Sequence record: MW272540.1
DNA length: 64,000 nt
Strand: one strand, 5' to 3'
The position numbers and the translations under genes are program-made. Below the pieces are notes generated by a model that did no database searches, had not been told where the DNA came from, and was given only the letters and a program-made list of their open reading frames with translations. Of this stretch, positions 4,568 to 52,675 are shown piece after piece. Numbering within the stretch: position 1 is the first letter of the stretch; every line of letters starts with the position of its first letter.

Positions 4568-4591
4568 AAAAATCGCCCGAAGGCGATTTTT
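4568..4591 (-). terminator. Rho-independent terminator with C(UUCG)G tetraloop
   Basis: AAAAATCGCC-TTCG-GGCGATTTTTT after the vs.1-like gene. Confidence 0.85.
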
Positions 4592-5099
4592 ATTTAATGC
4601 AATCACAGTTCCGAAGGAATCTAACGTTTTTGGCAACAGTTTCTACATAGGTCTTGTTAGACCCGTAACCTGCATTAAAACTCTCAACAACTTTTCTCCA
4701 ATTCCCACCACGAACTTTTTTCCAATAATCTAGCTCCATTAAAGCATAGTTGGCTGAAGATTCCATAGAATTGATCAACTCATTTCTCAACTTGATTCTA
4801 GACCTATAAGACATTTTAGAACCAGTCAACTGCTCAATTCTCTTAGTTGTGGATCTCAGGTTGTTTTGAAAAACACCATAATCACCACTTTTCTTATTAA
4901 TTAGGTTGACTCCGGCACGGCTTTCTGTCAGGGCAATAGCCGCCAAGGTCAGACCGTAACCAGATTCATTACCAAGCTCGTAAGCCCGTTGAATCGTGTA
5001 GATCTGATTTTCTGTCAACTCTTTATTTTCATATACCACTGCATTAGCAGTGAGCGAAGTAAGGGATAAAAGGACCCCAAAAAGTAAACCACTTTTCAT
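4590..5099 (-). CDS. vs.1: SLT-domain lytic transglycosylase-like protein with signal peptide (T4 Vs.1-like)
   Basis: Hydrophobic N-terminus ending TANA; AAIALTESRAG, DYGVFQ and SFNAG lysozyme-like motifs. Confidence 0.75.
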   Translation of the reverse strand: MKSGLLFGVLLSLTSLTANAVVYENKELTENQIYTIQRAYELGNESGYGLTLAAIALTESRAGVNLINKKSGDYGVFQNNLRSTTKRIEQLTGSKMSYRSRIKLRNELINSMESSANYALMELDYWKKVRGGNWRKVVESFNAGYGSNKTYVETVAKNVRFLRNCDCIK

Positions 5100-5160: not shown

Positions 5161-5179
5161 AGGTCTATTATTTAGACCT
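5161..5179 (-). promoter_or_regulatory. late promoter CTAAATA within a 7-bp hairpin
   Basis: AGGTCTA-AATAA-TAGACCT on the minus strand; CTAAATA at 5175-5169. Confidence 0.55.
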
Positions 5180-5187
5180 ACCTAAAC

Positions 5188-5217
5188 AGAGTATCACAAA
5201 AACAACATCAAAGTAAA
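5188..5217 (-). promoter_or_regulatory. early promoter
   Basis: TTTACT-18-TACTCT with TG extension; the same -35 is seen at 22750 and 48705. Confidence 0.5.
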
Positions 5218-5222
5218 GGTAT

Positions 5223-5338
5223 TTTTAGTTTCACTTGCAATCAAACTATAAAGTTTCTATAAGTATTTATATAGAAGATCTATAATTAGAAAAACGATGA
5301 GCGAAGCGAATCCGCGTAGCGTGACTCACTTCGTTCGT
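5223..5338. repeat. dispersed non-coding element, copy 1 (AT-rich core 5223-5287 plus GC-rich module 5294-5338)
   Basis: The core matches 48769-48833 at 59 of 65 nt; 5323-5338 is the exact reverse complement of 48726-48741. Confidence 0.9.
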
Positions 5339-5372
5339 CATTTAAGGGGTCTAGAATGCTCTATAACGAATT

Positions 5373-5708
5373 CTATATTAGGATAGTACAATCCATAAGG
5401 TATGTCATATGAACGATTAATGTAGCCCCTTCAAGGTGGTATCCTTTGACGTATATATCTGATACTTGGTCTTCATATTGTTCGCTAACAAGACTTTCAA
5501 TAATTGAAAACGTGCCAATTATACTTTCTTTTACTAGGTCGATCTCTTCATCAGACAAAAGGAAGTGTAATTCTTCACAATACATCTTTGCTTTTTGGCC
5601 TTGTGTCCCATTAGTTACGCTGTTTGTGCATGGGTTAATATAGAATTCCGTGGAACCGACCAAATGCACAACAGTTTCATTAAACTGATCAATAACCATG
5701 AGAACCAC
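5373..5708 (-). CDS. hypothetical protein
   Basis: 111-aa ORF, overlapping start with a GGAG-like SD. Confidence 0.65.
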   Translation of the reverse strand: MVLMVIDQFNETVVHLVGSTEFYINPCTNSVTNGTQGQKAKMYCEELHFLLSDEEIDLVKESIIGTFSIIESLVSEQYEDQVSDIYVKGYHLEGATLIVHMTYLMDCTILI

Positions 5709-45304: not shown

Positions 45305-47563
45305 TTAGATAGAGCAGCCAGCACAATCGGCTTCTTTGACAAATTCAACATCAGCATCTGATGCGTCGCGAGTGTTATGGTAATAGAATGACTTAATACC
45401 ATACTTCTGAGCAAATACTAGGTCCCCCAGCATTACACTCATTGGCAGTTTCCCATTAGGATATTCAGTTGGGCTATAGTTTGTATTTACGCTAATTCCT
45501 TGGTCGAAGAACTTTTGGAATACCGCACAAATACTCAAATAACCTTTATTCCCACCATTACGAACCATGTTCCACAATGTTTCATATTCATCAGCTAAAA
45601 TATCAGCCTCTGGAACCAACATATTGAAAGCACCATCTTTAGACGCTTTTACAGAAAGAATTCCACGAACTGGTTCAATACCGTTGGTCGCATTCAGTAG
45701 TTGCGAACTACTCTCTGCTGGCATTTGAGCAGACAAGGTATCATTACGCATTCCATAAATTCGGACTTGTTTACGCAACCATTCCCAATCTTGTTTAAGA
45801 TTGTTATCAACCAGTTCATCTACATTTCGATTATACCAATCAATAGGGAGCTGCCCACGAGACCATTTGGTCCGGTCATGCCAGTTGCTTGCCCCACGCT
45901 CTTTAGCCAGTTCCATACTTGCTTGGATCAGGGAGAATTGCATAGCTTCGATATGTTCGTGTACAAGTTCCAAAGCTTTCGGATCATTGTAAGTAAGGAA
46001 ATTTTTAGCCAAGAAATATGCTAAGTTAACAACACCGATACCCAAAGCCCGACGATTTTTAGCCTTCTCGGCAGCTGGTACTGGATAATCTTGATAATCC
46101 AAAAGGTTATCCAGAGCACGAACCATAATACGAGCTAAACGCAAATAATCTTTGATCGATTTGATTTTCCCAAGGTTAAACGCGGAAAGTGTACAAAGTG
46201 CGATTTCTTCTTGAATATCACCCATAGGATACGTTGGAAGATTAATCTCTTTACATAAATTGCTCATCTTGATTTTTTCAAGATATGGAGTGTATTTATT
46301 CACGTTATCAACGAACATAATATAAATACGACCGGTAGAACTACGCTCGGTCATCAAAGCAGAGAACAAATCAGCTGCTTTAACACGTTTCTTACGGATC
46401 ACATGGTTCAATTCCAGAGCTTCATATCTTTTCCGGAATTTTGTATCGTCTGAATCATAAAAATCATCGTACAAACGACCACCATCAACGTCAGGGCTGA
46501 ACAGGGTGATATATCCGTTGTTTTTCAAACGTTCAAAAAACAGTTTGTTTATATGAACAGAATAGTCAAGGTGACGGATCCGGGTTTCTTCGGTTCCCTT
46601 ATTGTTTTTCAAAACCAACAGCTTTTCAACTTCCAGATGCCACATAGGATAGTTCATGGTAGCACTACCACCACGCACACCACCCTGAGAACAGCTTTTA
46701 ACTGAGGTTTGAAAGTGTTTCCAGAAAGGGATTACGCCAGTATGAACAACTTCACCAGAGCGGATTTTAGAGCCTTCAGCGCGTATCCTACCACCATTAA
46801 TACCAATACCAGCACGTTGGGAAATATATTTCATGATAGCTGAACTCGTTTTAGAAATAGATTCTAGACTATCACCGGATTCAATTTTCACACAAGAACT
46901 AAATTGTCTAGTTGGTGTACGAACACCAGCAAGGATCGGTGTTGGTAAAGAAAATTCGAATTTTGATACTGCATCGTAAAAATCTTTCACATATTCCAAA
47001 CGCTTTTCTTTGTCTTTCTCATCCTGATGTAGACACATAGAAATAAGCATATACGCAAATTGTGGGGTTTCAAAAATTTGTTTTGTGGAACGATCTTTCA
47101 CAAGATACTTTTCTTTAAGTTGCATCGCACCCGCATATGTAAATTCATAATCTCGGGTATGATCAATAAATTTATCGATTTTATCGATCTCTTCCATAGA
47201 ATATTTTTTAATAATATCCGGATCATATACGCCAATTGCAACCAGATTTACCACATGCTCATGTAGAGACGGCGGATCAAATTGGTTATATACCTCTTTA
47301 CGAAGAGAATACATAGTAGAACGACCGGCAACATATTGATAATCTGGCTCATCTACAGAGATCATATTGACGGCTGCTTTAATTACTTGATTTTGAATTT
47401 CTTTGGTTGACATACCATCTGTAATGGATGGTAGAGCAGCATCTAGAATACTTCTCGGGGAAGCTTCTAGTCCATCACATGCAAATTGAAGAACCTTCAG
47501 GATCTTATCCTCTGAGAATTCTTCTGTGATACCGCTAGATTTAACTACTTTAGTAATGTGCAT
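45305..47563 (-). CDS. nrdA: aerobic ribonucleotide reductase alpha subunit
   Basis: ATP-cone start VVKSSG, PTPILAG, FSSC, NLCKE, MPAESSSQ, SFYY, CAGCSI. Confidence 0.97.
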   Translation of the reverse strand: MHITKVVKSSGITEEFSEDKILKVLQFACDGLEASPRSILDAALPSITDGMSTKEIQNQVIKAAVNMISVDEPDYQYVAGRSTMYSLRKEVYNQFDPPSLHEHVVNLVAIGVYDPDIIKKYSMEEIDKIDKFIDHTRDYEFTYAGAMQLKEKYLVKDRSTKQIFETPQFAYMLISMCLHQDEKDKEKRLEYVKDFYDAVSKFEFSLPTPILAGVRTPTRQFSSCVKIESGDSLESISKTSSAIMKYISQRAGIGINGGRIRAEGSKIRSGEVVHTGVIPFWKHFQTSVKSCSQGGVRGGSATMNYPMWHLEVEKLLVLKNNKGTEETRIRHLDYSVHINKLFFERLKNNGYITLFSPDVDGGRLYDDFYDSDDTKFRKRYEALELNHVIRKKRVKAADLFSALMTERSSTGRIYIMFVDNVNKYTPYLEKIKMSNLCKEINLPTYPMGDIQEEIALCTLSAFNLGKIKSIKDYLRLARIMVRALDNLLDYQDYPVPAAEKAKNRRALGIGVVNLAYFLAKNFLTYNDPKALELVHEHIEAMQFSLIQASMELAKERGASNWHDRTKWSRGQLPIDWYNRNVDELVDNNLKQDWEWLRKQVRIYGMRNDTLSAQMPAESSSQLLNATNGIEPVRGILSVKASKDGAFNMLVPEADILADEYETLWNMVRNGGNKGYLSICAVFQKFFDQGISVNTNYSPTEYPNGKLPMSVMLGDLVFAQKYGIKSFYYHNTRDASDADVEFVKEADCAGCSI

Positions 47564-47637: not shown

Positions 47638-48537
47638 TTGATGAACTATGGACATTGGACTACTGATGAAAAATTCGATCCAAGGGATATTCTTGGATTT
47701 GTTTATATGATATACTTCTCCAACGGGAAAAAGTATATTGGTGCTAAACGAGTATGGAAAAACCTTAAACGTCCACCTGCCACATACAAGAGGCAAGGTA
47801 AAACAGAATTTATAGAATCTGATTGGAGAAGTTACCGATCCAGTTCTAACGAAGTCGTTGAGCTGGAAGCAGCCGGTATCGAAATAACCGAAATGCGTAT
47901 CTTGGCAACGTATGATTCGTGGGGTAAGGTTCTTCTTTGTGAAGCAATGCTTCAATTCTCTTTGAATGCATTGTCCTCTGATACATACCTAAACAAACAG
48001 ATCGAAGGTTTGTTCACATCTGCATGTTTTGATAAAAAAGTATATAATGACGTTGCCCGATGCGTAGCAATCGAGCAATACGACCCGACCACACCACAAG
48101 TAATCGTTTATCGCGGTGGTGATCGAAGTATCATATGTGATAAACCAACCGCCAAAGAGTATATCAGATCAGGGTGGTCTGTTGCTTCACTTCCTTCAAC
48201 ATATCAACGTAAAAGCTATCCAATGATACCATACACAATCAAGTGTAAGGATACTGGGGAAGAGATTACAATATGTGATTTCAAAAAGCAATATGAAGTT
48301 GCAAAAAAACTTGAATGTCCTGCTGGGGACCTAAGTCGCCTTAGAGCTGGTGAAATCCTTAACATTGGGACTTTCACCATGAAAGATGTTAGGTCCCCCC
48401 AAATGTGGGAGAAGGACGGACAATTTTATTACAATGCTGCGGACCTTAAAAATGCTGGGGTAGATAAAAAAGATTGTATCCATCACCCGGCAGAAGACCG
48501 AGAAGCATATAGGATCAGGCTTGCATTAGCAGTATAG
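47638..48537 (+). CDS. GIY-YIG (Seg-like) homing endonuclease
   Basis: GFVYMI..KKYIG, DWRSYRSSS, EAMLQF, YLN. Confidence 0.85.
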   Translation: MMNYGHWTTDEKFDPRDILGFVYMIYFSNGKKYIGAKRVWKNLKRPPATYKRQGKTEFIESDWRSYRSSSNEVVELEAAGIEITEMRILATYDSWGKVLLCEAMLQFSLNALSSDTYLNKQIEGLFTSACFDKKVYNDVARCVAIEQYDPTTPQVIVYRGGDRSIICDKPTAKEYIRSGWSVASLPSTYQRKSYPMIPYTIKCKDTGEEITICDFKKQYEVAKKLECPAGDLSRLRAGEILNIGTFTMKDVRSPQMWEKDGQFYYNAADLKNAGVDKKDCIHHPAEDREAYRIRLALAV

Positions 48538-48648
48538 CCAAGCACCAACACAGAAGACCCACTCATACCATAAAGTAATGAGTTGTGGGTTAGTCCGATA
48601 ACATGCTGGAACAAGATTGATTCGGATAGTTTTTTGTTCGGTTTTCAT
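48526..48648 (-). CDS. small protein (40 aa) with a hydrophobic C-terminus
   Basis: MKTEQKTIRINLVPACYRTNPQLITLWYEWVFCVGAWLYC; AAGGA SD and its own promoter. Confidence 0.5.
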   Translation of the reverse strand: MKTEQKTIRINLVPACYRTNPQLITLWYEWVFCVGAWLYC

Positions 48649-48725: not shown

Positions 48726-48833
48726 ACGAACGAAGTGAGTCGCCGGAGGCGGTTCGCTACGCTCACAATTTTAGTTTCACTTGTAATCAAACTATAAAAT
48801 CTCTATAAGTAATTTAATAGAAGATCTATAATT
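48726..48833. repeat. dispersed non-coding element, copy 2 (GC module 48726-48765 plus AT core 48769-48833)
   Basis: Matches copy 1 at 5223-5338, with the GC module inverted and on the other side of the core. Confidence 0.9.
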
Positions 48834-48863
48834 TGATTTCATATGATACTATTATAAGGACAG

Positions 48864-48892
48864 AAAAGCCTACCCTTTTGGGTAGGCTTTTT
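48864..48892 (-). terminator. Rho-independent terminator after gene 35
   Basis: AAAAGCCTACCC-AAAA-GGGTAGGCTTTT on the minus strand. Confidence 0.85.
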
Positions 48893-48895
48893 CAT

Positions 48896-51800
48896 TTATA
48901 CTATCTTCCATAAGGTGTTTTGGAATTTCAAACCCACTTCACCGTTTGGTCTTATATCTATGACTTTATATTGACTTGATGGTTCAATCCATTTATCCAC
49001 ATCTGGGTCTTTAGCTATAACATAGTTACCAGATCCAATTGCAGCATATTTAGTTTGAACAATACCATCAATATTTAGTTGTATTTCCAATTCGGTGTAA
49101 GGAGTTATTTTCCCTTCAAATTCGATGATCATACTATAAGAAGAACCACCACTTACAATTTTGGAGATTTTATTATCGTAGATATAAACGTCATCTTTGA
49201 GTCTGCCGTTTCCAGCCACATCACCAATTGAAGAATCCCAACCAACTACGCCACCACCAGTTTTCAATAAAACGGATCGCAATTTCTTACGGAAAGTTAA
49301 GCTGTTCTGTATAATATTGTTGGATGGTATGACATAACCATTATCAGCTAGTTTATATACACGCGAACTTGAAACCATATTAGAACTTTCAATCATATCA
49401 ACTTGTCTAACAACAGATGCGTTATTTCTCAAACACATATTTGATGATATACCATCAACGTGATTATATGTAGAGTTATTAACAACACCATTTGTTTTAA
49501 TAGATAGGTTAGGAAAATTATATTGAATATCAACATCAAATTCTTTACCAGCAACAAAACCATGGTTTACAGTAATGTTACTAATTGTAGTTCCGCGATT
49601 TTTTACAACGAATTGTAATGTTGTTCCTAATAGGGTAACGAATATTCCATGGGTTTTATCTGTATTATCCAAATAATAACCAACAGTAAAGTTATCACCC
49701 AAAAATCTTAATCTCCACGATTCTTTTTGTGGCATCCATGCAGGTAAGATATTTAGATAGTTGTTATTCGCTAAATTTGGAACCCAAGAACTCATAGTAT
49801 TACCAATCATTTGAGGTTCTTCAAATTCTTGGAAGAAATAGTTAGATGTAGCAACGTCAGTCCCCATCGCATCGGTCTTTGTTGTATACACTACCAAACT
49901 ACGTATTGTTACGATATCACCGTTTCTGGCATTTGGCACACATACATACAGACCTGAATCATGAGTCGATTCTGTGTGGTTTTGATACAATACACCCTTA
50001 TATCTTCCAGTCGGAAGGGATTTCATAATACTACCAACACCAACGGTTGTACCATATACATCCTTTAAATATAGTGGTCGTGGACAATCTATATCATATT
50101 CTATACGGAATCTACCCCTTGGCGGTAAATTTAAATTGAATGTCATCCCACCTTCGGAAACGTCTTTGATAAATTTAAATCGGTTGTTACTTAAAACCTG
50201 AATAGGCTGGTTTAATTCATCTGACATTTTCCATTTTGATAGATCAACTGTATCATATACCAATACCTTAGAACCGTTTTGATCTTCTATCCCAGTTGAA
50301 TAGTAGTTCAATCTAGATTCTGGGTTGTTTATATATGTTCTAGCATCGTTATCACCAACCATGGTAATATCCCATATATTACCATTCCAACACTCGGTTT
50401 TATTATATCTTCCACCAATAGTTCTAATAACAGAACCAACTTTTAATTCCAAAACAAGACTGTGAGGAACATACGGAGCCAACACACCCCCAGTATACGG
50501 TTTTCCATCCAGCTGCACAATAGAAAAATATTGACCTGATATATTCAATGTTCTTGTTTTTGTGAGATATATCCAACCACCTTGCAACTCTTGGGTATTT
50601 GTACTTCTTCCGTCAAACAAATACATGTTGAAATCTGTTAAATTAAGAGTGAAGTTCAGAGTTATATATCCATTTTTGTTTAAGGAATATAGTGGGGGAA
50701 TTTCTAAACAAGTACCACCATTGAAATTATATGTATATTTTTTGTTCTTCACCCATTCAATAACTGGTTTTTCGCTATTTATATCTGGGTCCGTATAACA
50801 ATCAACGTCGAATTTGAGGTTTGTCATATTACCGGAGGTAATCCAGTTTTTACCATCTAGTCTAAAGAAGAAAAGGTGTCTCGGTTGTAGATTTACAGCA
50901 GATTGTCTCTCTGCTATTACTTCGTATCTTTTATTCAACTCGATACCAGTATTCAAGACTGCACCGTTGTTTTCTACTATTGTAACCCAAGCTTTAGATC
51001 CGGCTTTCATCCCAGCAGGTATTAGTTGACTTCCCACACCACAATATAACCAACCACCACCCGCATCAGGTACTATATCCGAACCAGAATAATAGATACC
51101 ACTAGATGGGCTAGATCCTTTGATGAAATTAAGTTTCTCTGATTGTGAATACTCATAATATCTAGAGTTATTAGGAATTAGATAATCTTCATATTCTGAT
51201 GTGATAATATAACCATTCATTTCAGAACCAACTCTAATTTCTTGGAAAGTTCTTTTATCTAGATCTTCAATTACTTCAGTACCTATAAGAACACCATTTA
51301 CATAGAATTTGATATTTGGGCTATCTACTTCCAATTTATACAGATATTCTTTGTTGCAAGAGACGATACCATTTGATCTAATTGTTTTTCCTGCATAAGT
51401 CACTGTATGCCCCATACCAAGAGGGTCTGATTGTGTTGTCATACCAATAAATATTGTGTCATCAGAGCCAGAACCAATCCTATTTGCTGATACGTTGGTG
51501 TCGGTATATACCATTGAAATGGAATATGCAAACTTTCTACCAACAACAAGAAATGGGTCTTTTATATATTTTCCGTCGTTATATAAAAATTGAGGAAAAC
51601 TAACAGGTTCCAAATTCCCATACTCAAAAGCGGTGACGTTCTTCTCTTTAATGCTACCTACTATATCACCACCAGTCTCTACAGCATCCTCTGTGATGAA
51701 ACCCCACTGACCTATTGTCGCTTTACCATCTTTTTGTACATTAGGTTTTTTTCTAAAAATAGAAACAGATCTAACCCCAGTAGTTCCCACGTATTGCGAT

Positions 51801-52675
51801 TTGATAGGCCACGATGTTGCATAGACCATGATACGATCTATTCCATTAGGGACAACAAAATCATTGTATACAGAATCCCATTGACCAGATGTATCTAAAG
51901 AGCTTACATATCCGGATGTAACGGATGTAGTCCCGTTATATCCAATGTAATAAAATCTAACAGATTCCCCTGCCGCAGCGGCAAGATCATCTCTATATGT
52001 ATCTAAACTGAATCTTAATGTCTCACCCTGATTAACTATCAGTTCGGAAAGCAAAACTTTATTCAGATACATGTTTATTTCTGGTGTTGTAGTTTTGGAA
52101 TTCATATATTCTTTTTGGTCAGATACAATAGAATTACCATATCCAACTACACCGATATCTGCAAATGTATCAAAAACGACTTCAAGAGATACTTTAATAG
52201 CAGAACTAACGCCATATTGTTCAACCATAATCTTTTTCAGACCACAGTCATATATAGCTGCATATCTGGTATTTTGTGTTCCGGTTGTTGGGTCCCAATG
52301 ATTATTCCACCCAATACTACCGATTTTCTTAAAGTAGTTGTTTATTGTGGTAGTTGTTGCATTTTCACCATGTGATATCATCAAAATAATTCCAGATGTA
52401 ACCGAAGACATCCAACCTTCGAATCTATTCACATCTGTACTGTTTTTAAAATTAAAAACGTCTCGCATACCAACGCTGAGATCGTTATTTATACTAACGC
52501 ATTCGAGGCCATCAACCTCAACAGGGTTAATAGAAAATCCGTTAATAGCTAATATCTTTTTTTCTGTATTCGTTTTTGGTGAAATTTTTATCTGATTAAG
52601 ACCAGAGAAATTTTCGGAAAGTTTATTAGACTTAATCCCACCATTCGAAATACTTGATATAACAAGTTCGGCCAT
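48896..52675 (-). CDS. 35: long tail fibre hinge/connector protein with large C-terminal extension
   Basis: Follows gene 34; RYAAIYD..LEVVFDTFADIGVVGY resembles T4 gp35 SYAAFY..LDVVFDSLEDVGATGF; 1259 aa. Confidence 0.75.
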   Translation of the reverse strand: MAELVISSISNGGIKSNKLSENFSGLNQIKISPKTNTEKKILAINGFSINPVEVDGLECVSINNDLSVGMRDVFNFKNSTDVNRFEGWMSSVTSGIILMISHGENATTTTINNYFKKIGSIGWNNHWDPTTGTQNTRYAAIYDCGLKKIMVEQYGVSSAIKVSLEVVFDTFADIGVVGYGNSIVSDQKEYMNSKTTTPEINMYLNKVLLSELIVNQGETLRFSLDTYRDDLAAAAGESVRFYYIGYNGTTSVTSGYVSSLDTSGQWDSVYNDFVVPNGIDRIMVYATSWPIKSQYVGTTGVRSVSIFRKKPNVQKDGKATIGQWGFITEDAVETGGDIVGSIKEKNVTAFEYGNLEPVSFPQFLYNDGKYIKDPFLVVGRKFAYSISMVYTDTNVSANRIGSGSDDTIFIGMTTQSDPLGMGHTVTYAGKTIRSNGIVSCNKEYLYKLEVDSPNIKFYVNGVLIGTEVIEDLDKRTFQEIRVGSEMNGYIITSEYEDYLIPNNSRYYEYSQSEKLNFIKGSSPSSGIYYSGSDIVPDAGGGWLYCGVGSQLIPAGMKAGSKAWVTIVENNGAVLNTGIELNKRYEVIAERQSAVNLQPRHLFFFRLDGKNWITSGNMTNLKFDVDCYTDPDINSEKPVIEWVKNKKYTYNFNGGTCLEIPPLYSLNKNGYITLNFTLNLTDFNMYLFDGRSTNTQELQGGWIYLTKTRTLNISGQYFSIVQLDGKPYTGGVLAPYVPHSLVLELKVGSVIRTIGGRYNKTECWNGNIWDITMVGDNDARTYINNPESRLNYYSTGIEDQNGSKVLVYDTVDLSKWKMSDELNQPIQVLSNNRFKFIKDVSEGGMTFNLNLPPRGRFRIEYDIDCPRPLYLKDVYGTTVGVGSIMKSLPTGRYKGVLYQNHTESTHDSGLYVCVPNARNGDIVTIRSLVVYTTKTDAMGTDVATSNYFFQEFEEPQMIGNTMSSWVPNLANNNYLNILPAWMPQKESWRLRFLGDNFTVGYYLDNTDKTHGIFVTLLGTTLQFVVKNRGTTISNITVNHGFVAGKEFDVDIQYNFPNLSIKTNGVVNNSTYNHVDGISSNMCLRNNASVVRQVDMIESSNMVSSSRVYKLADNGYVIPSNNIIQNSLTFRKKLRSVLLKTGGGVVGWDSSIGDVAGNGRLKDDVYIYDNKISKIVSGGSSYSMIIEFEGKITPYTELEIQLNIDGIVQTKYAAIGSGNYVIAKDPDVDKWIEPSSQYKVIDIRPNGEVGLKFQNTLWKIV

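Follow-up and report, generated by a model that had tools for sequence, protein, structure and literature searches.

Genomic Setting of the Repeated Element

The stretch of DNA analysed here (the window; 64,000 nucleotides of sequence record MW272540.1, in which a window position equals the record position minus 62000) contains two copies of an AT-rich intergenic repeat, copy 1 at 5223-5287 and copy 2 at 48769-48833, each accompanied by a GC-rich module with a central hairpin. They are two of six copies of a cassette of ~115 bp, consisting of a 66-bp AT-rich core and a ~45-bp GC-rich module, which is tentatively read below as a promoter/stem-loop unit that punctuates transcription. The 5 kb around copy 1 match Aeromonas phage ZPAH1 (MW272540.1) with 100% identity, a 230.9-kb T4-like myovirus of the Straboviridae, subfamily Emmerichvirinae; in a megablast search with these 5 kb, other Aeromonas phages matched just the ~120-bp element, in several places per genome. 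Copy 1 lies between vs.1/SLT (4590-5099, minus strand) and, on the opposite, upstream side, orf170 (5373-5699, minus strand). The neighbours of copy 2 are a small open reading frame (ORF) of 40 amino acids (48526-48648) and gene 35 (48896-52675, minus strand), and all flanking genes of both copies are on the minus strand. Past the 40-amino-acid ORF follow a gene for a SegE-type GIY-YIG homing endonuclease (47638-48537), which is carried on the plus strand, opposite to its surroundings, between nrdA and the cassette, and a 752-amino-acid ORF (45305-47563), which was placed as nrdA in the related phages 65 and CC2. The endonuclease gene is kept at the same place in phages 65 and CC2.

The original prediction, made from the letters of the window, had described a 65-nt core recurring with six mismatches, and this description is accurate: 6 of 65 positions differ, CTATAA stands at 5246/5257/5280 and at 48792/48803/48826 with spacings of 11 and 23 nt in each copy, and the end sequence said to be shared, TAGAAGATCTATAAT, is present exactly in both. 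A repeat search of the window returned the pair as its largest direct repeat (68 nt, 90% identity), all other direct repeats being at most 34 nt long with ~70-85% identity. The element was also correctly taken to be intergenic and non-coding, since the ORFs overlapping both cassette regions reach merely 20-38 amino acids and are unconserved; a small conserved peptide encoded by the cassette was rejected on the same grounds. The concern that copy 2 might be a misassembly is answered by phage Aswh_1, which was sequenced independently and has the same arrangement within a single alignment piece at 98.3% identity.

A Six-Copy Cassette Family in the Emmerichvirinae

Local blastn of the whole ZPAH1 genome gave exactly six copies, located at 16.0, 67.2, 110.8, 134.4, 177.7, and 209.6 kb of the record. 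The cores number seven in phage 65 (Ishigurovirus), spread over six sites, and six in CC2 (Ceceduovirus), and the six gene neighbourhoods are identical in the three phages: upstream of vs.1 and near alc (s1, copy 1 in the window), between the end of gene 35 and the nrd cluster (s2, copy 2 in the window), between gp54 and gp26 (s3), near ndd and gene 52 (s4), in a region of small genes of no known function (s5), and after inh (s6). Conservation in relatives, on which the original prediction had made its proposal depend, extends to 21 matching phage records, all of them from two genera of the Emmerichvirinae. Collections of viral, metagenome, and bacterial genome sequences were also searched for a degenerate pattern of the core, which was found in known phages, close environmental relatives, and one bacterial chromosome. 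A scan of IMG/VR with a 16-mer of the module gave 33 single matches, none of which extends past 20 nt, and these were dismissed as chance. The cassette is described in no paper found in the literature searched on phages 65, CC2, ZPAH1, P19, and the subfamily.

The orientation of the core is shared by the three phages: at s2, s4, s5, and s6 it runs in the sense of the flanking genes, and at s1 and s3 it runs against them. The one exception is the s2 copy of ZPAH1, of which the core alone is turned round compared with phages 65 and CC2. At s1 and s3 the core is directed away from two late genes, and elsewhere toward early-type genes; at the four sites with early-type downstream genes, the core is sense in nearly all cases. 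The copies occur once per 38 kb and are spaced on the circular map far more evenly than random placement would give (coefficient of variation 0.21-0.23, P 0.001-0.002), a statistic that was spotted post hoc and for which the three collinear genomes count as one observation.

Several published records show irregularities at the cassettes. At s3 of phage 65 (L042, 2152-2352), two complete cores face each other across a different, GC-hairpin-rich spacer. The published sequence of AS-zj has N characters and truncations within two cassettes (L052, ~4870-4890; L053, ~2570-2580), which suggests that assemblies collapse at cassettes and would account for the lower copy counts of some records. In the AP1 record (L066, 1-419), a coding sequence labelled “hinge connector of long tail fiber distal connector” enters the s1 core by ~15 bp (locus position 405); it adjoins alc, where other phages have vs.1, and is probably a mis-annotation.

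AT-Rich Core

The anatomy of the core was derived from an alignment of 20 copies, in which nearly every position is conserved. By its invariant positions, the core proper of copy 1 (TAGTTTCA...TTAGAA, 79% A+T) occupies 5226-5291 on the plus strand, so that the extent originally given, 5223-5287, marks a true repeat but not the limits of the core; the core of copy 2 occupies 48772-48837 on the plus strand, flipped with respect to phages 65 and CC2 at the same site. Among all 60-bp segments of the window, the copy 2 core is the least stable duplex. The copy 1 core ranks 166 of 63940, and an overlapping segment starting at 5238 is fifth in the list of non-overlapping segments.

A conserved box, TGNAATCAAA, is invariant in all cores (5236-5245 in copy 1) and ends 12 nt (11 nt in phage 65) ahead of TATAAG or TATAAT. 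Read from the sequence, copy 1 has a candidate promoter P1 at 5235-5263 on the plus strand, composed of TTGCAA (5235-5240), a 17-nt spacer, and TATAAG (5258-5263), in which the box would occupy positions -34 to -25. T4 middle promoters have the same geometry, their box lying close to -30 ahead of a -10 element; the sequence of the box is different here and is not a MotA box. The versions of P1 are TTGCAA-17-TATAAG in ZPAH1, GTGCAA-16-TATAAT in phage 65, and TTGCAA-18-TATAGT in a prophage copy described below, the last of which is flagged by a scan with the sigma-70 consensus. The box occurs 16-18 times per genome, and outside the cores it is not followed by core sequence, for which reason a role as a general middle-promoter box was rejected. 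A limited test of the ORFs lying between asiA and gene 52 for a MotA homologue gave no MotA or other Pfam domain.

A second candidate promoter, P2, is suggested by the alignment ~22 bp beyond the -10 element of P1. Its putative -10 hexamer, TATAAT at 5281-5286 on the plus strand of copy 1, is followed by invariant TTAGA; the T, the A, and the final T are invariant in the 20 copies, and the other positions vary (TACAGT, TATACT). A fixed TAnnnT with a varying remainder is, as judged from the alignment, the signature of a working -10 element, and the start predicted from it, 6-8 nt downstream, falls on the 5' edge or first bases of the GC-rich module. The CTATAA hexamers, likened earlier to iterons, are parts of such -10-like TATAA elements. 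At the 3' end of copy 2, a second, inverted box, TGAAATCAAA (48832-48841, minus strand), makes the s2 core of ZPAH1 two-faced and restores a gene-sense box plus TATTAA, so that a box still faces the downstream genes despite the flipped core. The T4-type late promoter TATAAATA, which can be read on the reverse strand of the ZPAH1 and CC2 cores, was rejected as a component because the late motif of the subfamily is CC(C)TAAATA(A) and because phage 65 cores do not have TATAAATA.

The same features bear on the proposal of the original prediction that the element is a replication origin. In this explanation, the six cassettes would be R-loop-primed origins like oriF and oriG of T4, and promoter and terminator effects would be secondary: a factor-dependent promoter with a box at -30 and a -10 element would fire through the AT-rich unwinding tract, and the RNA-DNA hybrid, held by its GC-rich part and by displaced-strand hairpins, would prime the leading strand. 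A minimal T4 origin measures ~100 bp and combines a middle-mode promoter with an A+T-rich unwinding element, and the T4 genome has at least five origins in 169 kb (PMC3016281). The cassette agrees in its density of one per 38 kb, in its conserved and even spacing, in the geometry of a box ~30 bp upstream ahead of a -10 element and then an AT tract, and in its cores, which take first and fifth place for instability of 60-bp duplexes in the 64-kb window. The orientation of the cores, free of the neighbouring genes and away from late genes at s1 and s3, would also suit an origin, as would the promoters that several neighbouring genes have of their own, the displaced-strand hairpin that either orientation of the module could yield, and the fact that all copies of a genome change together, as if read by one trans-acting factor. 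On the other hand, T4 origins have no common motif and need no GC hairpin (PMC3016281), and a GC-rich module stands here downstream of the promoter, where T4 has its unwinding element. No known initiator or MotA domain was recognised, the latter in the ORFs between asiA and gene 52; the spacing statistic has the limits given above; and the sites are not at strand-switch points. Spacing, instability, box geometry, and free orientation thus stand in favour of the earlier proposal, but the GC-rich module behaves as a transcript hairpin or terminator, and an origin family is considered possible, though on balance unlikely.

GC-Rich Module

The module of copy 1 (5296-5339, both strands) is an imperfect palindrome with conserved arms and a central hairpin, recognised by its fold and by its inverted match to the module of copy 2. 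Its predicted folding energy is -23.2 kcal/mol (z -4.15) on the plus strand and -25.4 kcal/mol (z -5.95) on the minus strand, on which no shuffled sequence folds as well. The foldable module postulated beside the core is therefore real, but its position is not constant: the copy 2 module (48727-48766, minus strand) is inverted and lies on the opposite side of the core, between the core and the ORF at 48526-48648. The TAGCGT motif had been placed in the loop; the loop is GUA or UAG and lies inside TAGCGT. The copy 2 module has the arm order termed form A (GTGAG..CGAAC, hairpin, CTCAC..GTTCG) and is identical to the modules of ZPAH1 s3, s5, and s6, that of s6 being the exact reverse complement of the s3/s5 module. 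CC2 has identical modules at s1, s2, s3, and s6, and hybrid arm orders occur at s5 of phage 65 and s4 of CC2. No solo GC modules were found away from cores.

The arms are conserved in sequence, one resembling GTGAGCGAAGCGAAC and the other CTCACTACGTTCG. The central hairpin, by comparison, has nine distinct stems (CGCC, CGGC, ACGGC, CCC, CGCG, GGCG, CATGC, and others), which are always paired and enclose unconserved loops of 3-4 nt. In the covariation analysis suggested for the element, RNAalifold retains the central stem as well as CGAAC/GTTCG, and two pairs show compensatory changes. The arms show no compensatory change and therefore look like sequence signals rather than helices; a pseudoknot in which GTGAG/CTCAC would cross CGAAC/GTTCG is unsupported for the same reason. 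The arms hold G-N-A loop hairpin motifs (GCGAAGC, GCGTAGC, and GTGAAAC, with ACGTAGT on the other strand), and motifs of this type form unusually stable DNA mini-hairpins.

When the module is read in the direction of the core, the T-rich complement of TTAGAAA comes next. Pairing of the arms is nearly perfect in copy 1, whose tail on the gene strand is T5, most other copies having a weak T-run; the resulting terminator-like hairpin followed by CGTTTTTCT (5287-5339, minus strand) was found by folding and flagged by a terminator scan in the same stretch. On the gene strand, copy 1 is thus a good predicted terminator directly after the end of orf170. Matches to Rfam around copy 1 were noise alone (E 0.4-2.8, far below gathering scores), and mimicry of a CRISPR repeat, considered in view of the TTAGAAA end and the hairpin, was dropped, as no CRISPR-repeat family was among the Rfam matches.

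A structured segment directly after promoter elements could also be the product itself, and a structured RNA or a protein-binding platform, named as fallbacks in the original prediction, are both possible in principle. In the first case, the cassette would be the gene for a structured small RNA of ~50-100 nt with its own promoter, acting in trans as a decoy or antisense RNA. Its conserved position after the promoter elements and its independence of the neighbours' promoters agree with this, and a core-driven transcript at ZPAH1 s2 and s3 would enter a nearby hairpin terminator. However, the two module orientations would make the RNA of some copies the complement of that of others, the loops are unconserved, no consistent terminator follows the module, and no Rfam family matches, so that little credence is given to this explanation. 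In the second case, the cassette would act at the DNA level as a phage counterpart of REP/BIME elements (RIP), in which a GC palindrome beside an AT-rich site for a bending protein or topoisomerase would mark domain boundaries or recombination hot spots. The sequence-conserved arms, with covariation confined to the central stem, would fit such a role, as would the even spacing, the two module orientations, the core and module inversions that occurred in evolution, and the prophage copy, whose core lies RIP-like between two inverted GC units. The cores also have an invariant AATCAAA(N)TATA that resembles a half-consensus of IHF, for which the full consensus is WATCAANNNNTTR. The match is imperfect (TAA, not TTR), the copies are merely six, no binding protein was identified, duplex binding needs no structure-conserving central hairpin, and ZPAH1 and its 98% relative show no inversion difference at s2 and s6; a DNA-level element is accordingly regarded as improbable.

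Neighbouring Transcription Signals

The leftward early promoter with TTTACT reported beside copy 1 is present outside the repeat at 5190-5218 on the minus strand and would serve vs.1/SLT: TTTACT (5218-5213), 17 nt, and GATACT (5195-5190). The last is preceded by TG and fits the early-promoter pattern found in ZPAH1 upstream of dozens of genes. A late-promoter motif, CTAAATAA, also lies upstream of vs.1 (5168-5175, minus strand). Variants of CC(C)TAAATA(A) stand upstream of gp23, 22, 20, 19, 24, 15, 13, wac, 9, 48, 4, 36, and 5.1, and gp26 too has the late motif; this sequence appears to be the late promoter of the subfamily, unlike TATAAATA of T4. Near copy 2, a strong hairpin with a 13-pair stem and T-runs on both sides (48863-48892) marks the end of gene 35 outside the repeat and is likely to work as a two-way terminator. 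Early promoters in the gaps of the first 62 kb of ZPAH1 (1-62 kb) often have a conserved leader, TTGTTGAAAC(G)A, after them, and a module arm of the phage 65 type, GTGAGTGAAACGAAC, shares the word GAAACGA with this leader.

By its sequence, the core fits neither the late nor the ordinary early promoter class. The cassette often has a terminator on its upstream side and, on its other side, the promoter of the downstream gene itself, and the difference of the core from both promoter classes, together with the promoters that the neighbours have of their own, indicates that the cassette is a separate unit.

Conservation, Evolution, and a Prophage Copy

Cores are ~90% identical within a genome, ~90% between ZPAH1 and CC2, and ~78% to phage 65, whereas the surrounding 6 kb have 66-83% identity between phages and the flanks of s2 and s5 are unalignable. 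Cores that occupy one site in different phages resemble each other no more than cores taken from different sites do. Conservation of the cores above their flanks indicates constraint on the family and concerted change of its members, through gene conversion or through co-evolution with a factor that reads them. ZPAH1 and Aswh_1 are collinear across s1, s2, and s6, with the same orientation at s2 and s6, and an active inversion switch was rejected on these grounds. ZPAH1 is classed in Ishigurovirus with phage 65, yet its cores are of the CC2/AP1 (Ceceduovirus) type; its flanking DNA, unlike its cores, is about equally distant from phage 65 and CC2.

The single bacterial copy is a core in the chromosome of Aeromonas rivipollensis DSM 24593, ~75-83% identical to the phage copies (L065, 7270-7900, equivalent to L056, 7410-8050). 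It lies within a prophage with terminase, lysozyme, and Ant genes and is enclosed by perfect 28-bp inverted repeats, each corresponding to arm plus hairpin. The cassette is part of a non-coding region of 1.5 kb, in which TGACACTAT occurs as three direct repeats alongside further GC units that resemble the arms; the remainder of the region matches no phage record. The prophage lysozyme has 50% amino acid identity to the T4-like e lysozyme of these phages, and the prophage carries a fragment of a SegE-type endonuclease, from which it follows that DNA passed between the prophage and T4-like phages. In a local tblastn of the prophage against the phages aimed at a shared trans-acting factor, the lysozyme and the SegE fragment were the sole matches. 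With Rfam, the prophage copy gave below-threshold matches to plant miRNA hairpin models derived from MITE elements, which reflect the long inverted repeat alone.

The perfect terminal inverted repeats, which fold like MITE-derived hairpins, the T4-like lysozyme and SegE-type fragment of the same prophage, and the SegE gene adjoining s2 raise the idea that the cassette is a functionless selfish or formerly mobile repeat, MITE-like or carried by homing-endonuclease traffic. Against this, two genera share the six sites and their orientations, conservation of the core far exceeds that of neighbouring coding DNA, the phage copies are without terminal repeats, and neither a transposase nor a target-site duplication was seen, the prophage cassette showing no duplication of flanking bases. 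Such an origin of the family is very improbable. A bolder form of the origin proposal would have the Emmerichvirinae start replication at the six cassettes, as the first family of sequence-conserved origins among T4-like phages, with a dedicated factor and a hairpin-anchored R-loop, and would have the prophage capture one of them for replication or switch-on by a superinfecting phage; it is doubtful, and more so than the origin reading by itself.

Proposed Role in Punctuating Transcription

A possible mechanism is proposed in which the cassette is an autonomous promoter/stem-loop unit that punctuates transcription units, similar to the PeSL cassettes of other T4-like phages. RNA polymerase may start within the core, probably assisted by a phage-specific factor, which is proposed because a -35 element is missing. 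The transcript would then open with a stable stem-loop. Transcription from the opposite direction would meet the stem-loop followed by the T-rich complement of TTAGAAA and stop, so that the cassette would act as a promoter in one direction and as a terminator in the other, and the copies would stay alike through gene conversion or co-evolution with the reading factor. Copy 1 would thereby stop transcription of orf170 before vs.1's own promoters are reached, and copy 2 has the gene 35 terminator on one side and the nrd gene cluster on the other. For promoter activity, this proposal draws on the invariant box, the fixed TAnnnT, the flagged P1 of the prophage, the second box at s2, and the mostly sense orientation; for termination and a role in the transcript, which we infer in the same way from sequence, it draws on the nine paired stems, the compensatory pairs, the copy 1 fold with its T5, and the lack of solo modules.

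A number of observations weigh against this proposal. No -35 element stands 16-18 nt from the invariant TATAAT of P2, a consensus scan found no site with at least 9 of 12 matches in either window copy, and P1 of ZPAH1 and CC2 has G, not T, at -7. The ordinary early promoters (TAGTTGAC, 17 nt, (TG)nGATACT), of which there are dozens, are unlike the core, and at s1, s2, s4, and s6 the cassette is separated from the downstream gene by ordinary promoter-like sequences, so that the downstream genes may not need the cassette. At s1 and s3, the cores of all three phages run against the flanking genes. Generic modules fold just slightly better than shuffled sequences (z -1.3 to -1.8) and have no clean U-tract in the core direction, and that the module can face either way with respect to the core would be strange if the RNA were sequence-specific. 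Finally, six evenly spaced copies are not what is expected of a local regulatory element.

With these points taken into account, the punctuating cassette is ranked first and the R-loop origin second, and the former is put forward as a tentative preference that does not amount to a probable conclusion. A transcriptional cassette accounts for the anatomy at least as well as an origin does. The two are not exclusive, because T4 origins are also promoters.

Should an origin family be proven, it would be the first for T4-like phages, for which origin choice and the partitioning of transcription are known in detail for T4 alone, whose origins share no sequence. Six sharply defined, conserved, and evenly spaced cassettes combine promoter elements, an unwinding-prone tract, and a hairpin, and they make two questions testable: whether they are origins, and whether they represent a special promoter class with its own factor. 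If they are merely promoter/terminator units, the result would be a modest one, adding a further group of phages, with units arranged differently, to those known to have PeSL. The cassettes would also explain assembly breaks in published genomes of the subfamily, and they mark DNA exchange between virulent T4-like phages and an Aeromonas prophage.

Comparison with Known Systems

The REP/BIME elements of enterobacteria are chromosomal, occur in hundreds of copies, and are not linked to promoter elements. The cassette resembles them in the GC-rich intergenic palindrome, in occurring in either orientation, in the AT-rich, putatively protein-binding segment alongside, and in a possible ability to terminate transcription or stabilise RNA, and the prophage copy has a palindrome-site-palindrome layout. 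Features of MITE elements and invertons are not shared by the family, as terminal repeats are found in the prophage copy alone and the phage sites are fixed across genera. With intrinsic terminators, copy 1 on the gene strand shares a long GC-rich hairpin followed by T5; unlike in such terminators, the arms are conserved in sequence over six sites and several phages, the module is always joined to an AT-rich core, and the T-run is mostly weak.

Among replication origins, an iteron type such as T4 oriE or a plasmid origin, in which an initiator binds clustered, evenly spaced direct repeats of ~12-22 nt, does not fit, since the cassette contains the three CTATAA hexamers alone and no direct repeats of greater length. 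The likeness to T4 oriF (uvsY) and oriG (gene 34) is closer and comprises a length of ~100 bp, a promoter (a candidate one in the cassette) in which a box near -30 replaces the -35 element ahead of a -10 element, extreme A+T instability, and several dispersed positions per genome. In oriF and oriG, the unwinding element lies downstream of the promoter and there is no GC hairpin, whereas the cassette has one; its unstable tract is also downstream of P1, yet includes promoter elements. The cassette box is unlike the MotA box of oriF and oriG, and no MotA homologue was recognised. The origins of T4 share no sequence motif (Kreuzer and Brister 2010, PMC3016281).

The anatomy of the cassette is closest to that of the PeSL cassettes of other T4-like phages (RB49/phi1, T4/PST, and KVP40/nt-1), which are composite repeats of ~100 bp with demonstrated promoter and terminator activity (Arbiol 2010, PMC2839356; Comeau 2014, PMC4122927). 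Both are intergenic composites of ~100 bp in T4-like genomes that join an AT-rich promoter to a stem-loop able to terminate (both activities being predicted in the present case); copies of either kind resemble each other enough for recombination, and their sequences vary from phage group to phage group. In contrast to PeSL, which are numerous and clustered in hyperplastic regions beside ORFans, the cassette has six fixed, evenly spaced, syntenic sites, several of which adjoin core genes (gp54/gp26, gene 35/nrdA, and vs.1) and two of which are antisense to the flanking genes. In a check for indel boundaries of the PeSL type, ZPAH1 and Aswh_1 were collinear, and at s2 and s5 of distant phages the flanks were unaligned and the cassette aligned. 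PeSL end in the ribosome-binding site and start codon of the downstream gene, and the cassette is not fused in this way, with ~20-110 nt from the module to the start codon at the non-antisense sites. PeSL have clear -35 and -10 elements of the sigma-70 type and a stem-loop upstream of or inside the promoter; the cassette has an invariant -10 without a -35, and its hairpin lies downstream, at the predicted transcript start. Unlike in PeSL, moreover, the ordinary early promoters of ZPAH1 are a sequence class different from that of the cassette.

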